A model generated the notes under the pieces. The model made no database searches. It was not told the DNA's origin and worked only from the letters and a program-made list of their open reading frames with translations. 64,000 bases of DNA, from the NCBI GenBank assembly GCA_950097015.1, contig CATNEN010000007.1, positions 2,356,001-2,420,000 of the forward strand, read 5' to 3'. The position numbers and the translations under genes are program-made. This DNA comes from Macrostomum hystrix (Eukaryota > Animalia > Platyhelminthes). Positions 1-64,000 of this stretch are shown here, piece after piece. Position 1 is the stretch's first letter. The number at the start of each line of letters is the position of its first letter.

Positions 1-3000
1 CCAACTAGAGAGAATCGATAATCCAAACTAGACAGAATTGATAATCCAACTAGAGAGAATCGATAATCCAACTAGAGATAATCGATAATCCAACTAGAGA
101 GAATCGATAATCCAAACTAGAGAGAATCGATAATCCAAACTAGACAGAATTGATAATCCAACTAGAGAGAATCGATAATCCAAACTAGACAGAATTGATA
201 ATCCAACTAGAGAGAATCGATAATCCAAACTAGACAGAATTGATAACCCAACTAGAGAGAATTGATAATCCAAACTAGAGGGAATCGATAATCCAACTAG
301 AGAGAATCGATAATACAAACTAGAGGGAATCGATAATCCAACTAGAGAGAATCGATAATACAAACTAGACAGAATTAATAATCCAACTAGAGAGAATCGA
401 TAATCCAACTAGAGAGAATCGATCATTTAACTAGAGAGAATCGATAATCCAACTAGAGAGAATCGATAATCCAACTAGAGAGAATCGATAATCCAAACTA
501 GAGAGAATCGATAATCCAAACTAGACAGAATTGATAATCCAACTAGAGAGAATCGATAATACAAACTAGGCAGAATTGATAATCCAACTAGAGAGAATCG
601 ATAATCCAAACTAGAGAGAATCGATAACCCAACTAGAGAGAATTGATAATCCAAACTAGACAGAACCGATAATCCAACTAGAGAGAATCGATAATCCAAA
701 CTAGACAGAATTGATAATCCAACTAGAGAGAATCGATAATCCAACTAGAGAGAATCGATAATCCAAACTAGAGAGAATCGATAATCCAAACTAGAGGGAA
801 TCGATAATCCAACTAGAGAGAATCGATAATACAAACTAGACAGAATTGATAATCCAACTAGAGAGAATCGATAATACAAACTAGGCAGAATTGATAATCC
901 AACTAGAGAGAATCGATAATCCAAACTAGAGAGAATCGATAACCCAACTAGAGAGAATTGATAATCCAAACTAGACAGAACCGATAATCCAACTAGAGAG
1001 AATCGATAATCCAAACTAGACAGAATTGATAATCCAACTAGAGAGAATCGATAATCCAACTAGAGAGAATTGATAATCCAAACTAGACAGAACCGATAAT
1101 CCAACTAGAGAGAATCGATAATCCAAACTAGACAGAATTGATAATCCAACTAGAGTGAATCGATAATCCAACTAGAGAGAATTGATAACCCAACTAGAGA
1201 GAATTGATAATCCAAACTAGAGGGAATCGATAATCCAACTAGAGAGAATCGATAATACAAACTAGACAGAATTAATAATCCAACTAGAGAGAATCGATAA
1301 TCCAACTAGAGAGAATCGATCATTTAACTAGAGAGAATCGATAATCCAACTAGAGAGAATCGATAATCCAACTAGAGAGAATCGATAATCCAAACTAGAG
1401 AGAATCGATAATCCAAACTAGACAGAATTGATAATCCAACTAGAGAGAATCGATAATACAAACTAGGCAGAATTGATAATCCAACTAGAGAGAATCGATA
1501 ATCCAAACTAGAGAGAATCGATAACCCAACTAGAGAGAATTGATAATCCAAACTAGACAGAACCTATAATCCAACTAGAGAGAATCGATAATCCAAACTA
1601 GACAGAATTGATAATCCAACTAGAGAGAATCGATAATCCAACTAGAGAGAATCGATAATCCAAACTAGAGAGAATCGATAATCCAAACTAGACAGAATTG
1701 ATAATCCAACTAGAGAGAATCGATAATACAAACTAGGCAGAATTGATAATCCAACTAGAGACAACTGATAATCCAACTAGAGAGAATCGATAATCCAAAC
1801 TAGACAGAATTGATAATCCAACTAGAGAGAATCGATAATCCAACTAGAGAGAATCGATAATCCAACTAGAGAGAATCGATAATCCAAACTAGAGAGAATC
1901 GATAATCCAAACTAGACAGAATTGATAATCCAACTAGAGAGAATCGATAATCCAACTAGAGAGAATCGATAATCCAAACTAGAGAGAATCGATAATCCAA
2001 ACTAGACAGAATTGATAATCCAACTAGAGAGAATCGATAATCCAAACTAGACAGAATCGATAATCCAAACTTGACAGAATTGATAATCCAACTAGAGAGA
2101 ATCGATAATACAAACTAGGCAGAATTGACAATCCAACTAGAGACAACTGATAATCCAACTAGAGAGAATCGATAATCCAAACATGAGAGAATCGATAATA
2201 CAAACTAGGCAGAATTGACAATCCAACTAGAGACAACTGATAATCCAACTAGAGAGAATCGATAATCCAAACTAGACAGAACCGATAATCCAACTAGAGA
2301 GAATCGATAATCCAAACTAGACAGAATTGATAATCCAACTAGAGAGAATCGATAATCCAACTAGAGAGAATCGATAATCCAAACTAGAGAGAATCGATAA
2401 TCCAAACTAGAGAGAATCGATAATCCAAACTAGACAGAATTGATAATCCAACTAGAGAGAATCGATAATCCAAACTAGACAGAATTGATAATCCAACTAG
2501 AGAGAATTGATAATCCAAACTAGAGGGAATCGATAATCCAACTAGAGAGAATCGATAATACAAACTAGACAGAATTAATAATCCAACTAGAGAGAATCGA
2601 TAATCCAAACTAGAGAGAATCGATAATCCAAACTAGACAGAATTGATAATCCAACTAGAGAGAATCGATAATCCAAACTAGACAGAATTGATAATCCAAC
2701 TAGAGAGAATCGATAATACAAACTAGAGTGAATCGATAATCCAACTAGAGAGAATTGATAACCCAACTAGAGAGAATTGATAATCCAAACTAGACATAAC
2801 CGATAATCCAACTAGAGAGAATCGATAATCCAAACTAGAGAGAATCGATCATTTAACTAGAGAGAATCGATAATCCAACTAGAGAGAATCGATAATCCAA
2901 CTAGAGAGAATCGATAATACAAACTAGACAGAATCGATAATCCAACTAGAGAGAATCGATAATCCAAACTAGAGAGAATCGATAATCCAAACTAGACAGA

Positions 3001-3681
3001 ATTGATAATCCAACTAGAGAGAATCGATAATCCAAACTAGACAGAATTGATAATCCAACTAGAGAGAATCGATAATACAAACTAGAGTGAATCGATAATC
3101 CAACTAGAGAGAATTGATAACCCAACTAGAGAGAATTGATAATCCAAACTAGACAGAACCGATAATCCAACTAGAGAGAATCGATAATCCAAACTAGAGA
3201 GAATCGATAATCCAACTAGAGAGAATCGATAATCCAACTAGAGAGAATCGATAATCCAACTAGAGAGAATCGATAATACAAACTAGAGAGAATCGATAAT
3301 CCAACTAGAGAGAATCGATCATTTAACTAGAGAGAATCGATAATCCAACTAGAGAGAATCGATAATCCAACTAGAGAGAATCGATAATACAAACTAGAGA
3401 GAATCGATAATCCAACTAGAGAGAATCGATCATTTAACTAGAGAGAATCGATAATCCAACTAGAGAGAATCGATAATCCAACTAGAGAGAATCGATAATA
3501 CAAACTAGAGAGAATCGATAATCCAACTAGAGAGAATCGATAATCCAAACTAGACAGAATTGATAATCCAACTAGAGAGAATCGATAATCCAACTAGAGA
3601 GAATCGATAATCCAACTAGAGAGAATCGATAATCCAAACTAGAGAGAATCGATAATCCAACTAGAGAGAATCGATAATCCA
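1..3681. repeat. Tandem satellite of mixed 22-bp and 23-bp units (CCAACTAGAGAGAATCGATAAT / CCAAACTAGACAGAATTGATAAT); runs off the window start
   Basis: Units read directly from the sequence. Minus-strand ORFs here repeat every 15 aa, equal to the 45-bp dimer. A degenerate tail with a duplicated ~52-bp block follows at ~3682-3870. Lies downstream of the splice donor at 3941, so it is probably intronic. Confidence 0.97.
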
Positions 3682-3941
3682 GGAAAACCATTAATGCCAC
3701 TAATGAGGAGAATCGATAATCTCGAAAGAAGAACCAATAATGCCACTAATGAGGAGAATCGATAATCTCGAAAGAAGAACCAATAATGCCACTAATCTTA
3801 TGGTAAATCCAACTTAAGAGAATCGGCTATCCCACTGAAAATCGATAATCCTTAAAAATCGATAATCCTTAGAAATCGTTAATACTGCTAACAAACATGA
3901 CAGCTAATCCTATTAAAATGGACAATCCCAAAAGCGCTCAC

Positions 3942-6900
3942 CATGAAGGCATCGGCCAGAGTGTTTCCACCGGTGGCAGCCAGCAGGCAGTCGGTCTCCC
4001 TGGCCAGATTGGTCACAAAGCAGACCCAGGCCAGCCGCACAGCTGCATCAGCCGTCATCAGCTGGGCAGCGCTGGACGGCACCGGCAACTCGCCGCCATT
4101 CGCTGCGTCGATTGTGGAGGCCAAGGCGGAGCGGCAGGCGCCGGGCTCGGATGTCAGGTTGCTCAGCAGCGTCAGGCACTGGCGCAGACGCCGCTGCTGA
4201 TCAGAAGACGGCGATGAAGGACTGGCGGACTCCAGCAGCTGGAGGCGCAGCTCGACCAGGAAGCCGGGCAGAAGCGACAGCAGGCGGGGCCGGCAGGACT
4301 CGTACAGTGCCAGGTTGGCCAGCAGCTGGAGTGCGTACTGGGCCAGGCGGGGCGAAGCTGAGACATTGGCCGCCACGCTGCTGGCGATGTCAGCAATGGC
4401 CGGCTGGTTGGAGGGCACGCCTGGGTTGGGGCGAGGCGGTGGGGTTTCTGCTTGTGCGTGCCAACAGGAAATAGGGACTCAGCAGTTTTTAGTTCACGGG
4501 TTTGGAGATAAGGTGAGATTAGATAGCGGGACAATCAGACAGGGGAGATAATACTAAAGGTAGATAATAGACAGGGGAGATAATACTCAAGGTAGATAAT
4601 AGACGGGGGAGGTAATAGACAGGGGAGATAATACTCAAGGTAGATAATAGACGGGGGAGATAATACTTAAGGTAGATAATAGACGGGGGAGGTAATACTC
4701 AAGGTAGATAATAGACGGGGGAGGTAATAGACAGGGGAGATAATACTAAAGGTAGATAATAGACAGGGGAGATAATACTCAAGGTAGATAATAGACGGGG
4801 GAGGTAATAGACAGGGGAGATAATACTCAAGGTAGATAATAGACGGGGGAGATAATACTCAAGGTAGATAATAGACGGGGGAGGTAATAGACAGGGGAGA
4901 TAATACTCAAGGTAGATAATAGACAGGGGAGATAATACTCAAGGTAGATAATAGACAGGGGAGATAATACTCAAGGTAGATAATAGACAGGGGAGATAAT
5001 ACTCAAGGAAGATAATAGACGGGGGAGATAATACTCAAGGTAGATAATAGACAGGGGAGATAATACTCAAGGTAGATAATAGACAGGGAGATAATAGACA
5101 AGGTAGATCGGGTAGATAAATAGACAGTATAGAAAATCGACAGGGAAGAGACAAGATAGAAGAGAGATAAGACATAGGAGAGACTAGACAAGGGTTAGAT
5201 TAGACAGGAGAGAGATTACACATTGGAAAGACTAGACAGAAAGACCAGAAAGACCAGCAGTCAGGCCGCTCACCGGAGAAGTTGATGAGGTTAAGCAGGC
5301 ACTGCAGCCGGACCTCCACAGCGGCTGAGTCGGAGCTGCCAACCCGACCGGTTCGGCGGAAAGCGTCGCAGATGGCGGCGACCAGGCAGCCACCGCGGCT
5401 GAGCCGGTCCATGTGGTGCTGGAACTGGGCCAGCCGGCCAATGAGCTGCATAGTCCTGACAGTGTCCGAGTCGCTGCCGCTAACCAGACACCTGGCCAGA
5501 ACCAGCGAGTCGCGATCTGTGAGCTGAACACTGGCGCAGTCGGATTTGCTCATTGCGGCCAGCCTGCTGGCAATGAACTCAGGCGTCAGATCATCAGGCA
5601 CATCGCCAACTGAAGAAGCGCTGTTAGCCGCAGCCTCTGAGTTAGACACCTTGGCTGCTTTGATTTCCTGTAGAAAATTAAAAAGATCAAACAGACAGGA
5701 TGTTTCTTCCGCATTGCTATAATAAAAGTTAAATAGGCCAGTTTGTGTACAGACCTGCTCAAAGTCTGAGTCGATAATCTCAGTTTCTGAGCTGGCAGCG
5801 GCGGCACCCAAATCATTCTGAGCTGATTTGTAAGCATCGGATCGAGCCGTCAATACTCGGCTGCTTGCCGTAGAATCATCTATGACAGTCTCGTCTGCTG
5901 CGGTGGACGATGCCGGTTCTTCCTCAACTATGGGAGTAACGGTGGACGATGCCGGTTCTTCCTCAACTATGGGAGTAACGGTGGACGATGCCGGTTCTTC
6001 CTCAACTATGGGAGTAACATGACGCCGTTTGATGGGCCCGGCAGCTTCTGGAGGCCTGACTGAAGTGTCAGCGGGTAGAGACTCCATTTGTAAGTCTTCA
6101 GAGGCTGCTGAAGCTACCAACGATTCCACAGCCTCCAGCTCCGAGTTAGCCAATGATTCATCAGGCTTGGCTGGACTCTCAGCCGATTGGTTTGCTTCCT
6201 GCTGCTTTGTTGATTTACCTGAGTTACAAAAGAAAAAATTGGCTGATTTAGGTTGCAATTTTCAGCTTGGCCACGCAATAACTAGCCAAATACTTTATAA
6301 TTTTCAGTTATTACAAAGTTTATCAGCATACTGTACTTAATACATATAACTTCCATTGATTATATTAAAATTACAGTCAGAAGAAATCACGTTACAACCA
6401 ATGCTAGCTAATGGATCATAAAGTTTAACTATCATAGCTATCTCTTAATAGTATAAGAATGTTTCAAAGCAGGCTACTTAAAAACAGTCTTTTTACTACT
6501 TTTAGCATGAAAACATGTTCAAAAAGATTCAAATATTGTCACTCATAGGACAAAAAGTTGGATGCAAAGATTAATTTTTGCATAGAAACATGCATAGTAA
6601 AGAAAAAAAGTATACCTAGAAAATATTTAAAAAGAGCTCAACATTAGTGGTAACAAAAAACAGAATCACATTACTAAAAATTTAATTTACTGCTTTTTGG
6701 ATTTAACTTTTTTAGTTTCAAAGAAACTCCTTTTTAAATAAATTGCATAAGGGTAAACATGTCATGTTTTCTAGCATGCAATCTATGTTAGTGACATTTT
6801 ACTGCGCAGTAAAAATGGCTAACTTTACTACATAGTAATGTCAAATGCAGTGAAGTTAGTGGTTTTTACTGCACTGTTTATAACATATTAAAAAACCACA

Positions 6901-14734: not shown

Positions 14735-16324
14735 ATGCCCCAGCGACAAGGCTCCTCTGGAGTAACTGGCTTCCTTGCGTTCTCCTGCTTTGCCGCATTC
14801 CTTGGCGCCGTCTGCTTCGGCTGGAGCACCGGCGTTATTAACAATCCAAAGACTAGCATCGTTCAATTGATCGTCAACTCGGTGCTCGCACACTACGGAG
14901 TGCGCCTGTCTGCCTATGCGTCGGAAGTGCTGTTCTCTGTAGTTGTGTCCATGTTTGCCGTGGGTGGCATGATCGGTGCCCTGGTCAGCGGTTACTGGGC
15001 TGAGAAGCTCGGGCGCAGGAACGGCATGCTGATTAATTCCGTTGTTGGCGTTGTGGCCGCTCTGCTGATGTCGCTTGCCAATCCAACTGGAAGCTTCGAG
15101 ATGCTGATAGTTGGCCGGCTGGTCATCGGATTCTGCAGCGCCCTCTACACCGGGCTGGTGCCGATTTACCTGACTGAGATTGCACCAAGGCGACTGCGAG
15201 GAGGGATCGGCGTGCTCAACCAGCTCGGCGTGGTGACTGGACTTCTTCTGTCGCAAGCTCTCAGCATCCAACAGGCGCTAGGTGGACCGCAGCTCTGGCC
15301 AATCTTGTTTGCCATCGCAGGCTTGCCGAGCCTCCTGCAGTTAGTTTGCCTGCCAGCCTGTCTGGAGACGCCACGGCACCTGCTGCTGACTCGACGCGAT
15401 GAGACTGCCGCGCGCTCAGCACTGCGTCGCCTACGCGGTTTTGGCAGCTGCCTGGCGGACGAAGATAATGAAATAATCGACGAGGAGATAGCAGAGATTC
15501 GCGCCGAATCAAACGAACAGTCAGGTGAGCAGCAGCAGGGCTGCTCGCGGCTCACTGCCCAGTGGCGGCCCCTGATAGTCGGCATTGTGCTGCACCTTTC
15601 GCAGCAGCTGTCGGGCATCAATGTTATATTTTACTACTCAGCTGATCTCTTCCAAGGCGTCGGGGTTTCGAATTCGGCTGCCCAGCTGGCCACGATCGCT
15701 GTGGGTGCAATCATGGTGGTCATGACCATCGTCTCTGTGCCGCTAATGGACCGCGCTGGAAGACGAACGCTTCACTTAATTGGTCTGGCTGGCATCACCG
15801 TCACCTCAGCGCTCTTCACCGTCCTATTTAGCGTCGGACAGCAGCAGAAAAGCGGCGTCGACGGCACGGTGCCCGCCGGTCTCGCCGGAGGCAGCATCGC
15901 GTTCGCGCTGCTAGTTGTTGTGTTCTTCGCCATCGGCCCCGGCTCCATTCCGTGGATGATGATGTCGGAGATGTTTCCACAGGATTCACGCTCAGCGGCC
16001 AACGCTGTTGGTGTTCTGGTCAACTGGCTGGCGAACTTCGCTGTGGGCATGCTGTTCCCAGTGCTCCTGGACAGCCTGCACTCGCTGGTGTTCGTGCCGT
16101 TCACCATCCTGACCGCACTTTTCCTAGTTTTTCTGTTCTTGCGCATGCCGGAGACGAAGGGGCGCAGCATCGATCAGATTGTGGCTTCGTTTAGTCGCGG
16201 CAGCGGCAGCTCAGTGAGTCCAGACGGTGGTGACAAAGGCGCCGCGAGCGAGGCGACAGTAATCCTGCAGGACACGGGCAGCCGGAGACTGAGTGGCAGA
16301 GGCGGCAGCGGAACCTACACTTAG
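14735..16324 (+). CDS. SLC2A: Facilitated glucose transporter, GLUT/SLC2A class I-like, intronless (529 aa)
   Basis: About 12 TM segments with sugar-porter motifs GRRNG, EIAPRRLRG, NQLGVVTG, ETPR, QQLSGINVIFYYS, DRAGRRTL, GPGSIPW and PETKG. Confidence 0.96.
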   Translation: MPQRQGSSGVTGFLAFSCFAAFLGAVCFGWSTGVINNPKTSIVQLIVNSVLAHYGVRLSAYASEVLFSVVVSMFAVGGMIGALVSGYWAEKLGRRNGMLINSVVGVVAALLMSLANPTGSFEMLIVGRLVIGFCSALYTGLVPIYLTEIAPRRLRGGIGVLNQLGVVTGLLLSQALSIQQALGGPQLWPILFAIAGLPSLLQLVCLPACLETPRHLLLTRRDETAARSALRRLRGFGSCLADEDNEIIDEEIAEIRAESNEQSGEQQQGCSRLTAQWRPLIVGIVLHLSQQLSGINVIFYYSADLFQGVGVSNSAAQLATIAVGAIMVVMTIVSVPLMDRAGRRTLHLIGLAGITVTSALFTVLFSVGQQQKSGVDGTVPAGLAGGSIAFALLVVVFFAIGPGSIPWMMMSEMFPQDSRSAANAVGVLVNWLANFAVGMLFPVLLDSLHSLVFVPFTILTALFLVFLFLRMPETKGRSIDQIVASFSRGSGSSVSPDGGDKGAASEATVILQDTGSRRLSGRGGSGTYT

Positions 16325-17883: not shown

Positions 17884-18655
17884 ATATGTTTCGTTTGGAT
17901 TAAATTTGGATCAAAATTGACAAAGCTCACAACCGAGGAGTCTCTGTCAGAGACTCTACAAGCGATCCTCAAGCGGAGTGATTGCTTGGAACACTTACAT
18001 GAGCACTAGCAGGCTGCAAAACAGACCATGGACTGGTCCTCATGGAGCTGGAACAAAGCAGTTTCAAAAGCTGAAAAAAAGAAAATATTTTGTCTAATTG
18101 TTTGATGTGAGTTGAGCACGTGATTGACAAGCGAACAATAAGTTTATTACTGATCAATTCATTCGCAACCTTAACAAAAAAGAATAACAATATTATAAAT
18201 GTCTTTTAAACGTTTTGTTGAAATCCCAAATGTACCAGTAAAGCGAGAGATTATTAGCTTGATTAAAAACAAGAGAAAAGCGGCGACTTGAATAAATGAA
18301 GCGCTGAAATCGAATAACAATATACGAGTATTAAGTTTTTAATAGATTTCTTGATTGAAAATTTCTGAAGTAAATATAGATTGATAAAAATATAACCGAC
18401 TGAATAAAAATCTTACACTCGGAGAGTGTCTGCAAGAGAAAAATTTCGTTTTCAGAAGTACATACCAGTTCTAGAATAAATACGAGGCGTGGCAAAAGAA
18501 GCACTGCAAGCGTTATTGAAATTAAGACAAATTTTCTGCCTACATTTATTTTAGCAATAAGATATCTGGCACTTCTCAGCAGCTATGGCAGCATAGCAAG
18601 TGCTACTACGTGTATCTGTGTCAGCTAGCTGGACTCAGTCGCATAGTTAGTCACC

Positions 18656-21600
18656 TCAATCAGCCGTCCTGCGATACAGAGACCGCTTCCAATGTCTTTC
18701 GCTCTCTTTCTCGGCAGCTTCAGCAAGTCGAAATGTGTTCCTTGGAGTCGCGTTGGCTGGCAGATTCCTTTCGGCCATCCGCTTGTAGATTTCCGTCGTC
18801 TCCGCACTCACCCGATCGTCTAGGAATACAAGAAAGCGCCGAGTCACCTTCGTCGCCTGCATCAGCTCCAGCAGGTCGGCCAGCAGCTGCCGGTTTTCCT
18901 CCGCCTCTTCCTGAAACCAGCGCACCATCGCGGGCGTCAGCAGGATGACAAACTGACGAGTGCGCTTAAGAAACCGCGGGGTCGCCTCAGCAGCGCCGTT
19001 GAACACGCGCTCGAAGCTGTCCGGAAAGGCAACCACCAGCGACGGCTGGCAGCTGGCTAGAAGAAGTCGACGGCTGGCGCTCTCGGCAACAATCGAGCGA
19101 AGTAGGCGAGCGGCGCTGGCCTCTTCAGGCGTTGGCGGCTGCGCCAACAGCAGGACGTCGCATCCACAGCCCCCCGAGTGGGGCGGCCACTCGGGCTGCT
19201 GCTGTAGCGTTGGCGCTACAGTCAGAGGAGAAATATTTATTGTTTCGCTTACATAATTTGTCAGTCAGCATATGAATCAAATTTACGAGCTATCAGACAG
19301 TGTGCATACTCACTGAACTTTAATTTCGAGTCTCACAACAACCCCCAACCCTTCTCTCTATATATGGACCCTGGACAGGGCGAGAAATGGATATCTTACT
19401 TGTACTTTTGATGAGATAAACAGACCCCTTGGCTCGCCCTTCACTATCTGCGCGAATGCAATCAGCAGCTGAAGTCAAGTCGCCTTACCCGCCATGTCAA
19501 GTGTGCAGACGTCATCCATCAGAGAGCCTGAATCGGTTGGCATTCCTCCAGCACCTGCTAAGATTTCCACATCTTCCTCTCCCGATAGCTCGACAGAAGC
19601 CCTCGTCCGCATCGGAACACCAGTCACTTGGTGCTGTTGCTGAAACTTTGCACGACAGACCAGCGAGGCCACTTTGTACTCCCAGTCAATGGTGCCATGC
19701 TGGACCGACCGGCTAAACAGAGCAGCAACCGCACCGGACACCTGGTGCCCATATGATTGTTGGGGACGTTCATTCGACAGGTCGCGAGCCAGTTTCAGAA
19801 GCACTATGTGATCGGATGGATTCCGACCGCTGGCTGACATTTCGTCCACGGCCTGCAGCAGGTCGTGAAAGCCGGCGTGAAGGAAGCGGCGAGACAGTAA
19901 CACCACAACCGTGCGGCTGAAGCGGACTCCATCCGACACCGACTCGAAGCGAGTCTGCTGCAGGAGACCGCTGCTACGATGAACGGCATAGTCTATGGCC
20001 TGGGAGCTGCTCAGGCGGTAGAATCGGAAAGCGGAGTCCAGGTCGCGAAGAACGCTGACAAGGGTCAACTCATCCTGAGGTGATGTTTTACATTGCTTTT
20101 CGTAACTTAACTAGTTTTAGCAAGTTTTGTATAAACATTGCATTGTTTAGCTATGTACGAGTATTAACTCAAAGCCATATGTACTAAGAAATTGCTGAGA
20201 ACGGTACAGAAAATCGGCGTTTAAATTTAAAATTAAGAAATTGGCTAAGACTGACACAAGATTGACCAGTAATCTAAGAACTAGCTAAGCGAGCTAGAAG
20301 GTATTTATATCGCCTAATTAAAAGTGATAAAACAGTGACCACTTTTTTTTACTAAATTTCGAATCGTTTGACGCTCATCGGAATTCATGCCGATGGGATT
20401 GAGTGCAGATATGACCCCAAATCTAATATCTTACCTGTTGATCGGCCAGAAAGAAGACGTCAAACTCGAAGGCATCACTGTGCCCGCCGCCGCTACTACA
20501 TAGGTCGCCCGTGCCGGCGGCTCTGCCGCTTCGCTGTCGTCGTGAGTTCTGCATGTACTTTAGAATGAAAAACATTTCCACCGCCCCATAAACTTTGTGC
20601 CGCTTAGTGACTAGCGCTACAAGCAGCAGGCACCCGAAAGCAGCCCCCACGGCTGTGAGTGTCCATTTAAGAACCGCTTGCCGCCTGGCATCTTGATAGG
20701 TTTCTATGGCAACGCAAAGCCGCTGCAATCTCCCTCTATCGTTAACTTGATAGGGCGCGCTTAAATTGAGTCTATAGTTCTCTGTCCAGCCCGAGTCGAT
20801 GTACTCATTGTAGGCCTCATTAAATATTTTGTCTAGGAATTTACACTCGATCTGTTCAAAGTCATTCACAAACTGGCCTAGCTGTGAGATGTTCATAAGC
20901 TGGGTCTGGAATCTGAGCCAGCCAGTTTCACATGAGCAAACCCAGGCGTTGCCGCGCAAAGTCAGTATGGAGAGGCGTCGAAAATTGTTGAAGATTCCGA
21001 GATCGAAGGGCCGAATGAGGTTATCGTGCAGCTCGAGCCGGCAGAGCTTGTCTTCTAGTCCCGTGAAGGTAAACTGGCTGATGACGCGAAGCTTGTTTTT
21101 GCTAAGATAAAGCATTTCAATGTTATAGGAAAAGTCCGTTCCATTGAACGCATAGTCCTCAATGTGCAGTATGTTGCTATTAGAGAGGCTGAGATAGCGC
21201 AGGCCATTGGAAGGTGACACCTGGGCATTGGCCCAGCTGATAGTGTTGCGCGTAAATTTTCCGGCAATGCCGATCATTTCGGCATTATTTAGCCACAGCT
21301 TCTTCACCGGAATGCGAATAGGCACGTTGAAGGGATCGGCCCGCAGGTAGTCGCAGTTCACGTCCGAGTAAATCCAGTCGAACGAGTGCCAGCAGAGACA
21401 GGATCGGATGCATTTGATGCGGTGCGGCCCCGTCCAGTTTTTCGGAAAGTACTGGGGATAAATTTCCACTTCCATCTCATCGTAGTAGGGACAGATGAAG
21501 TCGCTGGGATGAGATTGTTCTAAAGTTTTCAATGACTTTTGAGTCGCATTCTCGCGATCGAAGAACTCGCAGCTGTATTTCTTAGTTTCGGTGGTCGCGA

Positions 21601-23478
21601 ACTGCGGGTACTGATAGACTTGAGTGCAGTCCTTTCCCTGCTTCTGAACCTCGTGCTCCGAAATGGCATAAACATGGCTGCAAGGGCACTGCTGCTCCAC
21701 TTTCTGGTCGGAGATAAATAGCAACACTCGGGACGCTCTATTGCTCCGGTTGCTCATTTTGAAATAGTCGCTGTGCCAGTCGGTGATGCTGTTGTTCCTC
21801 AGTTCCAGGCTGTGCAGCTGGGTCAGGTTGGTAAAGCAGTCGCAGTCAATGTCGCTGATGAAATTGTGGTTTAGCCTGATTAGCGTGAGATTCGGCGATT
21901 GTGGAATGCTGCTAGTCAATATCATTTTCAGATCGTTATTTGAAATCTCAAGTTTCTCCAGGCGGGTTAGAGAAGCGAGCTCGAACTTTTGCAGCCAGTT
22001 ATAATTGAGACTCAGTTCTAGTAGGCTGGTGGTCAGAACAGATTGGCTGAATGCCATGGCGTTTATAGACTTCAAATAATTGTGAGACAAGTCGAGGTAC
22101 TGTAGTTTGACCTACAACGGGACAGGGGCAAGTTCCGTAGTTAAAAGTATTGCTATGAATTGATCAGATAAATCAGATTTTTATAGGATATATCTCAAAG
22201 ATGGTGGCAAATATTTTATGTAATTCATGATTATTCTCCTTTGATCATTAATCTGTTTCTCACCTCAAACCAAGGTGACACCGCTCCAATGAAAGGTATC
22301 TGATTGTATGACAGATCGAGAATTCTTAAGCTGTCCTTGGGAGCACGGAACCAATAGCAGCAGGTCTGTACATCTGAGGGTGACCAGCACATGTTGTTGT
22401 CGTACAGGCTCGATATAGCATTGTGGCTCAGATTGAGCTTGATAAGATTGCTAAGAAGTGAAATCACATTTGGAATTTTAGTGAGCTGGTTGTAGGACAA
22501 GTCAAAGTGAGACAGCTGGCTGGGGATCAACTCCCATTTCTGCAGCCGTTCGAACAGCGGTCCCTCTCTAATACGGTGCTGAGCAAAGCTGAATGTGAAG
22601 CCACTCGTGCTGCTGCTGTCGTCACTTGCCTTAAAGAGCACTTTCTGCCAGGTGAGTTGGCCGAGCTGCTTTTTTAGCTTCACTAGCCAGGCCGTTTTAT
22701 TTCGCAGCGTCGCCGATCTGTTTTCGACGGCATCGTCCAGGTAGTGATTAAGCGAGTCCATCGCCAGGTCGTAAATATTTTCGCCAGCCATACTCAGATT
22801 GGCTCGGCTGACGACGAAATTCTGAAGCGACATCACACCCATCATGTTGGATACACTGATCACATCTAGCGGAGTGTCAATAAGCTGCATCTCGACCAGC
22901 CCCTGGCACTTCATGTTAAGATAGAGCGGAAAGTAGACCACAATGCAGTTGCGCAGAACCACCGAGATAAGTTTGCAGTGTCCGGGCTCGAAGGTGGAAT
23001 CGTATTCAAGCCTCTCGGTGTACAAGGCAGCGAGGCGCGAGTGCAACGGGCCCAGATTGGCCAGCATGACGCTCTCGTGAGTGCTGACGTTCTCTCGCTG
23101 GAGCTGGCCGAAGCTGAGATTTTCGTACTTCACCCGGCAGTGAATCAGCTCCACATTGTACGGTGGGAAAATCCTATCGTTGCCTCGAGAGTGCAGAAAG
23201 GTCATCTCGTGCAGGTCGACTTCACTTTTAAAGGTGAAGTTGCTGCAGTCGATGGTCAGCCTGGAGATGATCATGAATGGGAGCTGCTTGCACTCCAGTT
23301 CAAAGGAGCTTGAATTCACAGCCTCAACCAGATAACAGTGTACCATCTTAGACGCCAAGTCCTGACGACAGCTGCAGCTCACATTGGTGTCGTGCAACAC
23401 GTAATTTGGTGTCTGAGTATCTGCTGGGGCAGCTGGAGCAGCCAGCATCAGAGACATTATAATGATGAGTGCGTGCAT
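18656..23478 (-). CDS. Toll-like receptor: signal peptide, LRRs with internal cysteine clusters, LRRCT, TM, TIR, and a second TIR-like domain (1345 aa)
   Basis: Exons 23478-22264, 22111-20435, 20074-19489 and 19215-18656, all GT-AG with phases 0/0/1, total 4038 nt. Motifs: LRRs (LSHFDLSYNQL, LRILDLSYNQI, LYLSKNKL), internal QCPCSH and CIRSCLC...VNCD clusters, LRRCT LRGNAWVCSCE, TM WTLTAVGAAFGCLLLVALV, TIR FEFDVFF and SRTVVVLLSRRFL. Confidence 0.85.
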
Positions 23479-48300: not shown

Positions 48301-51300
48301 ATGGCTGCCGCAATGGACATCCTTGGAGCCGCTTCGGCCGACAGCCAGAAGCAACAGCAGCAGCAGCAGAAGCAGCAAATGTCAATTGATGACGATGATG
48401 AGGAGCCGTTTCACCTGGCGGGCCTCTTCCTTGGGGCTAGAGACGGCGATGCTGCGCGCGTCAAACAGGAGCTGCTCCTTCTGCCCGCAACCGTTGAGAT
48501 CAACGGCCGTAATCGCAGCGGCGAGACTGTCGTCCACGTCGCCGTGCCCACTGGCTCCCTGGCAATCCTTGAGGCGCTTCATCAGCGGGGCGTCGACATG
48601 CACCAGCTGAACCGGGCCTGCGAGAACGGCCTGCACATTGCCTGCAGACTTGGCGACATCAACGTGGCTCGATTCTTTGTTGAACGAGCCGCCGTTTGTG
48701 TAGACGGCCAAACCAAGGACGGCGACTCGCCAGTTCACCTGGCTGTGAAGAGGGGTCACGCCGGTGTTGTTGAATATCTCGGCTCGCGGGGCGCTAATCT
48801 GAATGCGCAAGATCGCTCATTCGAGACACCGCTGCACGCTGCTGCTGCTGCTGGCAGCGTCGACTGCGTCCGCACACTGGTGCAAGCTGGCGCCAGGATC
48901 TACATGGAGGACCGCGTCGGCTGGACCCCACTGGAGCATGCAATCAAGCGTCACCAGACAACCATTGCGCTCATGCTCATTAACGCAGGTGCGCCGATAG
49001 ACCATGTTGACCATCAGAAGAGAGAGTGCCCGCTACATCTGGCTTGCCGCGAGGGTCTTCTACCTGTGGTGCAGGCTCTCTGCGCCTACGGCTGCCGAGT
49101 GGACGTCTACAACGCTTTGGGCGTGACTCCACTGCATATCGCATCCCGCGCTGGTCACTTGGAGCTCGTCCGCTGCCTCCTACTAGCAGGCGCGAGTCCT
49201 CAGTTGACTAGTCGCGACGGCGTCCTGCCCGAGGTGATGGCGCTGGCTCAGAATCATACCCTCACGGCCAGTCTCTTGGGAAAGATGCGTCCGGAGAGAC
49301 GAGCAATTTGTGTGGAGCAGCTGGTGCCCACACAGCGCCCGCTGCCCCGCATCAAGCTGAAGGTGTTCGGCGACAGCGCCTCTGGCAAGTCTTCGCTGAT
49401 CGGCAGCCTTAGATCGAATGCCATCACGGGCTTCTTTCGAAAAAAGTTTAAAAGTCAAGATGAAGCAAACAGTCTAGATGATGAGACTCAGACATTCTCC
49501 ATGCGTTCGAGAACAATGCCTGTCGAGATGAACTTCGAAGCGGTTCACGAGGCCTACACGAAAGGAATTCAAGTGCAGAGCATCGGAATCACAGGTGCTG
49601 GAGACTTCTCAGTCTGGGAATTTTCTGGCTATCAACCATACTACCTGTTCTACGACCACTTCATCGGTGACACATCATGTGTCCACCTGATTCTGTTCAA
49701 TTTGATGGACAGCTTTGAGCTGATGCGTCAAAAGGTCATGTTCTGGGTGAACTTTGTCATGGGTCGGATTCCGGCTCGGGAGCCGCTGGGCTTCTGTGGT
49801 AAGCCGAAGAGCATGGCCCGCATAGCGCTGGTGGGCACTCACAGCGACCGCGCCGCCGGATTGAGAAATGCCGAAGGCCTGCTTGAGAATCGAGACGCCG
49901 ACCGCATCCTAGAAGAGGTAATGGCTCTGACCCGCTACCGGCTTGATGTCTGCGATCGCATCTTTGTTGTGAATACCAGCGAGGCGATGTCGCCCGAGAT
50001 GAAGGCTCTGCGTAGCCAGCTGGCCGATTGGCGCGCCGAGATTCTTCGCCATCTTCCGTTTTCAAACGGATTCCTGGACGTGGTCATTAGCCGCATCTCC
50101 GAGTGGGTCAGCGGCACCCAGTTTCCTGTGTACACTTGGCAGCAATTCGTTGAGACCGTACGCAACAAGGTAAACCCCCTCTGTAGCGAGGATCACCTGA
50201 AGGACCTGATCCAGGAGCTGCAGTATGCTGGAGAGGTCATCTACCTAGAGTCCGACGCCGGTCACGATATGATTGTGCTCAGTCCGCAGTGGCTCTGCTC
50301 CGGTGTACTCGGCTTTCTACTGTCGCAGGACAACATCTCCCAGGCTAGAGTCACTGGCAGTTTCACAGCAGACGACATTCAGTTTATGATTGCCGGAACG
50401 GAGGCTAACCAGCTCCTGCGGATTCTAACCGCCCTGGACCTGTGCACTCAAGTCGAGGTCGAAGACGAGATTCAGTACGAATTTCCCAGCCTGAACTTTC
50501 TGGACAGTGTTCGCGGCCTATGGGAAAAGGAGCCGCGGCACGACGCTTCAGTCTACGCCGGAATGCAGGTGCGAGCGACCAAGTCGCAACTGGTTCACAT
50601 ATTTCCCCGGCTTCAGTGCAGCCTTCGACGCAGCCTCAAGGTAGACAAGGACGATGAGCTTCACTCAGCCGTGCTGAGCGAGGCGGACCTGTTTCAGTGG
50701 CATCACGGCTCCAAGCTGTCACTGGCTGGCATTGAGTGCATGCTGCGAATGGAGGAGTGCGATCAGGTGCGTGCGTGCACGACTTCTAAGCTGCAAATTT
50801 TTCGCCAGTTCCTGATTTCCGAATTCTCCAAGTAGATTTTATTGCAAACGCTATTATAGGTGATACGCTTGAGAGCCAGGGGCCCCCGACAGCAACTACA
50901 ACTGCTGTTCGGAGTCTACCAGGACATGGTCAATCTGATTGAGCAGACCATCGAGGACACATGCCCCAGCATGGAGTACGAGGTTTCCGTTCTGAGTCCG
51001 AAGGAGTTGCGCAATCACTCCAAGGTGGCCATCGCGGTGCCGCAGGGCGTGGTGTACCGCGCCATCGAGGAGCAGCGCAACCGCGGCGGATCCCCCACAT
51101 CCGAAATCATCGTTAACTTCGAGGAAGGCCTCGTCATGGAGAGCCTGGAGAGTCTCTTGTGCTTCGGCAGCCGACAGCTGCTCAGCCAGCTGACTCTGGG
51201 CCCGGACTTGCACCTGTCCTGCCTGAGAACGCCCGCCTTCCAGCGCCTGTGCAGCATGTTCGATCCGGTTGATCCGCTGGGCAAGGACTGGTGCTTGCTG

Positions 51301-51651
51301 GCCGTCCGGCTGGGCATGACGCAGAGTGTCCCCACCATCGACAGCGGCAACGAGTGGCTGCGAAGCCGCACCGCCAAAATTCTCGACGAGTGGGGAAAAG
51401 AGCCCGGCGGCACCATCGGAGCGCTGATCGCCATCTTCCGAGAGCTCGGCAGGGGCGACGCGGCCGAGCTGCTGATGGACTCGGCGCCACTCTACCAGTA
51501 CTCGCCTAGTAAACCAGAAGTGGATTCGACGACGGGCGGCGCTGCAAATGTCGCGACTGGCACAACGGCCGACGCAGCCGGAGCCTCTGCCCACGACGAA
51601 GATTTGGACCAGGCTGTCGGCGGTGGCTCCGGCTCGACGCTCAGCCGCTGA
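48301..51651 (+). CDS. DAPK1-like: DAPK-like Roco protein: ankyrin repeats, ROC, COR and death domain; no kinase domain visible (1085 aa)
   Basis: Exons 48301-50766 and 50860-51651 with a 93-bp phase-0 intron. About 8 ankyrin repeats (GENGLHIAC-type, GDSPVHLA, ETPLHAAA, GVTPLHIAS). ROC motifs KVFGDSASGKSSL, VWEFSG and LVGTHSD; COR motif IVLSPQWLCSGVLG; death domain DPVDPLGKDWCLLAVRLG...RELGRGDAAELL, closely matching DAPK1. Confidence 0.92.
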
Positions 51652-61774: not shown

Positions 61775-62299
61775 GTGAGTTTCTCCTGTCGTGAGCTCGT
61801 GTTAATTTAACTCTACACGAGTAGCTTAACAAACTTATTCCCCGTATTTTCCTGATTTCAGAGCACAGCTTGGAAACAAATGATTCATGAAAGAAATTAA
61901 CTGGCTTCAAGACTTCAAGGCGTCGCTACATCGATCTGTAAAATATTTCAAAATGAAAGAAAAAGTTTTGACAAACAAATTGTGTAGCTACTAATTACCA
62001 AGCTGCTCATTTAGTAGTCAGTTGTTAATTTCTCCTGTTAGCCTTGTCAGGATTCAATGCATTCTCAACCTGCAAGTACTTTGTTCTTGCTATGCGGACT
62101 CATATTAGAAGTGATAGTTTTAGATTTGCCTCACATTATAGATTCATTCGACTCACTGAATGATCTATTTTTTAAACTAAATTCACGATATAATAAAATT
62201 TTCAACAAAGTGAATGTTTCGCGTTTAAATTATCCTTTGCTGCTCATTCATAATCACGCTCACACACTAAGCATACTCACACACTCTAAAATTCAAACA

Positions 62300-64000
62300 T
62301 GACACACTCACCCACACGCACACCCATACACACACACACACACCCACACGCACACCCATACACACACACTCATAAACACACACACACACCCATAAACACA
62401 CACACACACACCCACACGCACACCCTTACACACACACTCATAAACACACACACACACCCATAAACACACACACACACCTATAAACACACACACACACACC
62501 CATAAACACACCCACACCCATAAACACACACACACACACACGCACACCCTTACACACACACACCCATAAACACACACACACACCCATAAACACACACACA
62601 CACACCCATAAACACACACACACACACCCATAAACACACACACACACACACCCATAAACACACACACACACACCCATAAACACACACACACACACACTCA
62701 TAAACACACACACACACACCCATTAACACACACACACACACCCATAAACACACACACACACTCATAAACACACACACACACCCATAAACACACACACACA
62801 CCCATAAACACACATACACACACACCCACAAAACACACACACACACACCTATAAACACACACACACACACCCATAAACACACACACACACACCTATAAAC
62901 ACACACACACACACCCATAAACCCACACACACACACCCATAAACACACACACACACACCCATAAACACACACACACACACACCCATAAACACACACACAC
63001 ACACCCATAAACACACACACACACCCATAAACACACACACACACCCATAAACACACACACACACACACCCATAAACACACACACACACCCATAAACACAC
63101 ACACACCCATAAACACACACACACACCCATAAACACACACACACACCCATAAACACACACACACACACCCATAAACACACACACACACCCATAAACACAC
63201 ACACACACACACCCATAAACACACCCACACCCATACACACACACACACACACACACACACCCAAAAACACACACACACCCATACACACACACACACACAC
63301 ACCCATAAACACACACACCCATAAACACACACACACACACATAAACACACCCACACCCATACACACACACACACACCCATAAACACACACACACACACAC
63401 ATAAACACACCCACACCCATACACACACACCCACACCCATAAACACACACACACACCCATAAACACACACACACACACCCATAAACACACACCCACACCC
63501 ATACACACACACACACACCCATAAACACACACACACACCCATAAACACACACACACACCCATAAACACACACACACACCCATAAACACACACACACACAC
63601 ACACATACACACACACACACCCATAAACACACACACACACACACATACACACACACACACCCATAAACACACACACACACACACCCATAAACACACACAC
63701 ACCCATAAACACACACACACCCATAAACACACACACACCCATAAACACACACACACACACACCCATAAACACACACACACACATAAACACACACACACCC
63801 ATACACACACACACACACACACCCATAAACACACACACACCCATAAACACACACACACACACACATAAACACACCCACACCCATACACACACACACACAC
63901 CCATAAACACACACACACACCCATAAACACACCCACACCCATACACACACACACACCCATAAACACACACACACACACACACACATAAACACACCCACAC
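62300..64000. repeat. CA-rich satellite: (CA)n runs interrupted by CCCATAAA; runs off the window end
   Basis: Direct inspection. Confidence 0.98.

Follow-up and report, generated by a model that had tools for sequence, protein, structure and literature searches.

A conserved last exon gives a Macrostomum Toll-type receptor family a tail that is probably a second, strongly diverged TIR domain

The subject of this analysis is a predicted Toll-type receptor gene on the minus strand of a 64,000-nucleotide stretch of the Macrostomum hystrix genome (contig CATNEN010000007.1; the whole stretch is called the window below) and, in particular, the C-terminal tail encoded by its last exon. The best explanation for bases 19215-18656 (minus strand) is that they form the final coding exon, constitutively used, of a receptor gene with four exons and that the encoded tail is a second Toll-type TIR domain, diverged beyond the reach of hidden Markov models (HMMs). 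Judged from the sequence, this joint reading, a 'twin-TIR' Toll, is probably correct. The exon, its splice join and the purifying selection acting on it are established, and so is its fixed pairing with the preceding TIR-like segment (TIR1) in a four-gene family that is restricted to Macrostomum.

The four-exon receptor gene and its relatives

Four open stretches on the minus strand are brought into one frame by canonical GT-AG introns of 152, 360 and 273 nucleotides (nt), as was read directly from the DNA. The gene has the following parts (a slash marks a splice boundary):

22264..23478, minus strand: exon 1, with the ATG, a signal-peptide-like start and the N-terminal leucine-rich repeat (LRR) region; donor GAG/GTGAGA, phase 0 (from the open reading frame and its translation, Pfam LRR_8/LRR_4 and the splice site read)
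20435..22111, minus strand: exon 2, with LRRs and internal cysteine clusters, LRRCT, a transmembrane helix and the strand that opens TIR1 (FEFDVFFLADQQ); donor CAG/GTAAGA, phase 0
19489..20074, minus strand: exon 3, which completes the diverged TIR1 and adds an acidic linker; phase-1 donor G/GTAAGG at its end
19216..19488, minus strand: intron 3, 273 nt, GT-AG, phase 1; its sequence is not conserved with M. lignano, its position and phase are identical in all paralogs and the ortholog
18656..19215, minus strand: exon 4, with 186 codons (the split first one counted) for the tail domain and then the stop TGA (18656-18658); putative second TIR-like domain
18545..18550, minus strand: AATAAA about 106 nt past the stop, probably a polyadenylation signal (from the sequence and its position)

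Exon 3 ends in ...GAC ATG GCG G/GTAAGG, with its last base at 19489 and the donor GT at 19488-19487 (phase 1). The acceptor ...ctgactgtAG/CG CCA ACG places the first base of exon 4 at 19215, and the G+CG join keeps the frame open up to the TGA at 18658-18656. The in-frame phase-1 join of 19489 to 19215, put forward in the earlier note, is thereby borne out, and a Macrostomum lignano ortholog carries the same join. The strings that had been quoted from the tail (CDVLLLAQ, AARLLRSIV, TRQFVILLTPAMV and RRFLVFLDD) are all present in exon 4.

For exons 1 and 2, Pfam returns LRR_8, LRR_4 and LRR_1, while the translation of exon 2 displays internal cysteine clusters, an LRRCT, the transmembrane helix and a strand reading FEFDVFFLA. 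On the basis of these features, the predicted product of about 1345 residues is assigned to the multi-cysteine-cluster (P-type) Toll-type receptors. It would comprise a signal peptide, the LRR ectodomain, the transmembrane helix, the strongly diverged TIR1, an acidic linker of about 50 residues and the tail, which would be an alpha/beta domain of about 165 residues. The searches were run exon by exon or with the database ortholog.

When the tail profile was searched against 1.84 billion protein representatives (E<=0.001), two clusters were found, both from M. lignano, and nothing outside them, no mollusc protein included. One of them, P0001 (PAA67356.1, UniProt A0A267F0V0), is the M. lignano ortholog with the identical four-exon join; a word search with its residues 1165-1357 returned only P0001 itself. 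The other, P0002, is a chimeric 2297-residue model whose tail has no DNA reference (no encoding contig is on record), and it was excluded from the alignments. The orthologous entries PAA67356.1 and PAA88883.1 (UniProt A0A267F0V0 and A0A267GS98) are named 'TIR domain-containing protein' by UniProt, a label for which the region meant could not be checked. They come from another species and represent an uncharacterised hypothetical protein, but they share the four exons, the phase-1 junction, the tail and an identity of 62-70% in every exon. Exon 1 is 66% identical to P0001 residues 23-405, exon 2 is 62% identical to residues 405-961 and exon 4 is 70% identical to the last exon of PAA67356.1. The junction in the M. 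lignano locus (L008) is likewise of phase 1 (GCC A/GTGAGG ... AAG/GC). Since the GenBank annotation of the M. lignano assembly goes back to a transcriptome built from RNA-seq with genome guidance (PMC5730564), the four-exon join is transcript-based in that species. At the nucleotide level, the window resembles the M. lignano locus only in the exons (23331-22259, 22117-20430, 20078-19644 and 19204-18660). The ratio of non-synonymous to synonymous substitution rates (dN/dS) between the two species is 0.17 for the tail exon (dS about 1.2) and 0.20 for exon 3.

The M. hystrix genome itself holds three tail paralogs besides the copy in the window. Six-frame searches of the 220 megabases (Mb) turned up four tails and four TIR1 segments and no others, each tail with a TIR1 of its own. 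At all four loci the tail lies directly downstream of a Toll-type transmembrane segment and a diverged TIR1, from which it is separated by the same phase-1 intron; this intron falls a few codons ahead of a (D/E)WPP motif in every copy. In the paralog L003/L005, one open frame of 979 codons runs from the LRRs through the transmembrane segment, TIR1, the phase-1 intron and the tail core, and ends at an extra short intron ahead of the last exon. The claim that exon 4 belongs to the receptor is thus upheld by the transcript-derived ortholog, by the pairing of tail and TIR1 at all four loci and by the conserved phase-1 intron. The earlier note had also considered regulated single-TIR and double-TIR isoforms. 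If the donor is skipped, the frame does read G K A T and then the stop TGA at 19477-19475, as claimed. Nothing supports a regulated choice, however: retention of intron 3 leads to an early stop in three of the four genome copies and in the M. lignano ortholog, and one paralog stays open through the intron.

Within the tail family, the introns differ in a further respect. Two paralogs (L002 and L003) contain an extra intron of about 75-90 nt within the tail at ...VGQ/V... (about 8004-8080 of L005 and about 6149-6240 of L006). At the same codon the window has a consensus-like CGG/GTGAGT (18806-18811, minus strand), yet it reads through in frame, and so do the paralog L004 and M. lignano. This distribution indicates that an intron was gained or lost within the family.

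Character of the tail domain

The tail was described from a five-sequence alignment (A3) together with profile-profile alignments (hhalign). Its main motifs in the window are the following:

19181..19192, minus strand: (D/E)WPP motif opening the tail, with invariant W9-P10-P11 (alignments A1 and A3)
19142..19162, minus strand: CDVLLLA, a box-1-like first strand, pairing with CDAFVLFH of Toll-type TIRs of the same genome (hhalign)
19022..19024, minus strand: Pro64, invariant and located in the loop that follows the second strand; it may be a BB-loop proline, the register being uncertain by about 3 residues (A3, hhalign register and interpretation)
18935..18967, minus strand: KRTRQFVILLT, the most conserved block, pairing with NSKRVIAVIT, the betaC strand of Toll TIRs, and followed by the invariant W99
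18815..18841, minus strand: RRFLVFLDD, a betaD-like (fourth) strand, pairing with NRLIHILFP
18668..18694, minus strand: HWKRSLYRR, a box-3-like C-terminal helix motif common to all four paralogs and resembling FWKQVLYRMP of the LRR-TIR genes L010, L012 and L013

Both the box-1-like CDVLLLA and the box-3-like HWKRSLYRR are thus present and conserved. The C-terminal motif takes the form W-x3-L-(Y/F)-R-R in all four paralogs and lies on the extra last exon in two of them.

For comparison, six Toll-type TIRs of the same genome (L010-L015) were found with PF01582 and aligned, and their profile was compared to that of the tail. The tail alignment A3 scored 25.9 against this set (P 0.003, 97 columns). 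None of the 40 block shuffles reached this value (14.5±2.0, maximum 19.2), and the controls stayed low as well: 11.5 for the reversed alignment, 11.0 for Ras and 14.9 for short-chain dehydrogenases (SDR). With greedy extension, the alignment covers 147 collinear columns from the first strand (box 1) to box 3, where ERHWKRSLYRR pairs with KNFWKQVLYRM. The identity to L010, L012 and L013 is about 14% over the aligned columns. It was also found that an HMM built from the Toll-type TIRs places five of five tails above 18 of the 19 Ras/SDR controls, and four tails above all 19; the tail scores fall within the range of genuine TIR_2 domains. In the ESM Atlas, the clusters nearest to the window tail are TIR (0.91, the ten best all TIR), and the tail of L004, 26% identical to it, reaches the same top TIR cluster as its first match (0.86); both results are to be taken as leads. 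Each of these lines is weak on its own, but all of them agree and the negative controls do not. From the collinear box 1-betaC-betaD-box 3 profile match and the language-model neighbours, a diverged TIR fold appears likely for the tail.

Several results weigh against this assignment. The HH probability of the match to the Toll-type TIRs is just 10.7%, and the reverse comparison scores 19.5. With the Pfam models TIR, TIR_2 and SEFIR (PF08357), neither the five tails nor the complete P0001 has a match at E<=10. Genome-wide scans with the PF01582 and PF13676 HMMs return more than 30 other loci and none of the four tail/TIR1 loci, and the tail profile finds no TIR among PDB sequences. The box-2 string (RDxxPG) is absent from the tail, the invariant Pro64 being the only residue nearby. 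Structure prediction, to which the earlier note had looked for a decision, was of little help, since the AlphaFold models reach an unusable confidence (predicted local distance difference test, pLDDT, of 45 with the single sequence and 42 with the five-row A3).

TIR domains have a flavodoxin-like fold, in which five parallel strands alternate with five helices (betaA to alphaE). Both low-confidence models display a beta-alpha alternation with a number and order of elements that fit betaA to alphaE. Foldseek and VIA-align, applied to the low-confidence model, did not separate TIR from STAS, GTPase, GDSL or flavodoxin-like folds. The earlier description of exon 4 as TIR-like is weakly supported by the profile-profile match, the box-3-like motif and the ESM Atlas neighbours, and it finds no backing in the Pfam and PDB searches or in the poor AlphaFold models. 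The Pfam, PADLOC and PDB-sequence scans of the tail returned nothing above noise (Beta-Casp at E 0.034, PP2C at 0.022 and UbiX at 0.45).

The upstream TIR1 (exon 3) is strongly diverged too. It has no Pfam or PDB-sequence match and lacks the box-2 proline. When compared to the TIRs of the same genome, it scores 24.8 with the Toll-type set and 29.2 with a larger TIR set, against 12.9±2.3 for the shuffles. The earlier observation that TIR1 carries no Glu at the position used by NAD-cleaving TIRs (NADases) agrees with alignment A2. The comparison of the tail to TIR1 was not significant, so that an origin by local duplication cannot be shown.

A serious but clearly less probable explanation is that the tail, although a genuine C-terminal domain joined on by splicing, is of another kind: a Macrostomum-specific alpha/beta or partly helical module in which the TIR-like motifs are convergent hydrophobic patterns, for instance a regulatory or inhibitory C-terminal extension like that of Drosophila Toll. 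The missing TIR HMM match, the low HH probability, the fold searches that do not discriminate and the restriction to two clusters among 1.84 billion representatives would all suit such a module. It would not, however, account for a similarity that is specific to Toll-type TIRs and absent for Ras, SDR, shuffles and the reversed alignment, nor for the collinearity from the first strand to the box-3 motif. The W...LYRR shared with canonical Toll TIRs of the same genome and the arrival of both ESM Atlas queries at TIR clusters likewise speak for a TIR. The proposal that exon 4 is a separate downstream gene, or a conserved non-coding stretch joined in frame by coincidence, is close to refuted. The exon does lie 273 nt beyond a possible in-frame stop, and the M. 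hystrix join was read from DNA alone. But the two parts are joined in the transcript-derived ortholog, they are adjacent at all four loci with the same intron phase, and dN/dS is 0.17 in the receptor frame. The tail also contains no Met before residue 96 and therefore cannot be a gene of its own.

It is very improbable that the tail is a catalytically active, SARM1-like TIR that cleaves nicotinamide adenine dinucleotide (NAD), with the receptor signalling by NAD depletion or nucleotide second messengers. In the window tail, W99 is followed by E102/E103, in the helix that bears the catalytic Glu of NADase TIRs. The nearest ESM Atlas clusters, moreover, are bacterial TIRs, many of which are NADases. 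Yet the residue four positions after W99 reads E, D, R, E and E across the five tails of A3 (the register is uncertain), and a conserved NADase role is unlikely because of this variation. There is also no similarity to a TIR_2/SARM-like set (score 12.7). Of the explanations considered, the second, diverged Toll-type TIR thus remains the preferred one.

Signalling, adaptors and genomic surroundings

TIR domains signal by homotypic assembly. If the tail is a second TIR, ligand-driven dimerisation of the ectodomain would bring the tandem modules together to supply a homotypic TIR-TIR surface, which the second module would double. MyD88-like Death-TIR adaptors, whose genes lie elsewhere in the genome, could then be recruited to this surface. 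As the adaptor-binding unit, the distal module would be a better candidate than TIR1, since it has kept the invariant loop Pro64 and the box-3 W...LYRR; it also retains an invariant Trp, located in the helix that follows the third strand. A scaffold role would be likelier than an enzymatic one, because the Glu at the position of NAD-cleaving TIRs is not conserved.

The genome indeed encodes candidate adaptors. A Death domain and a TIR_2 domain are found in one open frame of 516 codons (G000:C38:30080434-30081027, minus strand), an arrangement that is MyD88-like. At G000:C38:17955229-17996330 (minus strand), five tandem units each combine a Death domain with two TIR_2 domains, one partial (1-74) and one full (1-116), and this Death-TIR-TIR array is possibly an array of adaptors. 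As MyD88-like genes are present elsewhere, the receptor need not carry its own adaptor, and the suggestion in the earlier note of a receptor with a fused adaptor is not supported.

The window contains some other features. A Death domain match (60 bits) lies at 51241-51477 (plus strand), within a DAPK-like gene. About 2.3 kb downstream of the 3' end of the receptor gene, on the opposite strand, an intron-free open reading frame of 529 residues (14735-16324, plus strand) reads as a multi-pass membrane transporter that may belong to the sugar-transporter type. The ends of the window are extreme in composition (a GC skew of -0.90 and an AT skew of 0.64 at 62001-64000; an AT skew of about 0.4 with 35% GC at 1-4000) and are probably simple or satellite repeats.

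Relation to known Toll receptors

Twin-TIR Tolls, with a P-type ectodomain and two tandem TIRs, have been reported from bivalves, namely the Pacific oyster and Hyriopsis cumingii (PMC5845394, PMC8181103). These bivalve receptors resemble the predicted Macrostomum product in the P-type multi-cysteine-cluster LRR ectodomain, the single transmembrane helix and, if both Macrostomum modules are TIRs, the two tandem C-terminal TIR-type modules. They differ in that the mollusc TIRs are recognised by standard domain models, whereas neither Macrostomum module matches Pfam TIR. The Macrostomum intracellular modules are TIR-like at the profile-profile level only; that they belong to one polypeptide is supported by the ortholog. 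Since bivalves are known to have this architecture, it is not new as such. The novelty lies in the phylum, in how extremely both modules have diverged and in a tail restricted to Macrostomum; what is widened is the phylogenetic range and the divergence of a known kind of receptor.

The best profile-profile partners of the tail are the LRR-TIR genes L010, L012 and L013 of the same genome. They share with it the first strand opening on CD and hydrophobic residues, the betaC and betaD blocks and the box-3 W..LYR(R/M). The tail, in contrast, lacks the DRxxxPG box-2 string and has the unique (D/E)WPP leader. SARM1 and the bacterial and plant NADase TIRs possibly share the TIR fold with the tail, and the motif analogy drawn in the earlier note (DVFISY, VLVLSPGAL) concerns the first and third strands. 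The tail differs from them in its lack of profile similarity to the TIR_2-type set and in the Glu of the catalytic position, which is not conserved.

L010 (76-2313, plus strand) corresponds to G000:C1:26818045-26821251, L013 (814-3099, minus strand) lies on G000:C29, and L012 is found on G000:C38 near 8.43 Mb. Each of the three is a single open frame of 745-761 residues with Pfam LRR_8 and TIR above the curated cut-off (25.3 and 23.2 bits). They may be regarded as further, more canonical candidates for Toll-like receptors (TLRs) in a flatworm.

A published survey reported zero TLRs in Platyhelminthes, Macrostomum lignano included (PMC8609888). A more far-reaching version of the twin-TIR proposal is doubtful. 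According to it, the distal module, having kept the invariant loop Pro and box 3, would be the signalling-competent TIR and TIR1 a degenerate spacer, the second TIR would seed adaptor filaments in cis, and twin-TIR P-type Tolls would be an old spiralian type shared with molluscs. If it were true, the view of flatworms as animals without Toll receptors would be overturned.

The family shows how TLR surveys may miss flatworm receptors: the standard TIR models no longer recognise either of its intracellular modules. It might also reveal the degree of divergence that a TIR can undergo while still signalling. In a genus that is ready for transgenesis, it would offer a tractable system for studying what a second TIR adds to a Toll receptor, be it cis-seeding, autoinhibition or the choice of adaptor.
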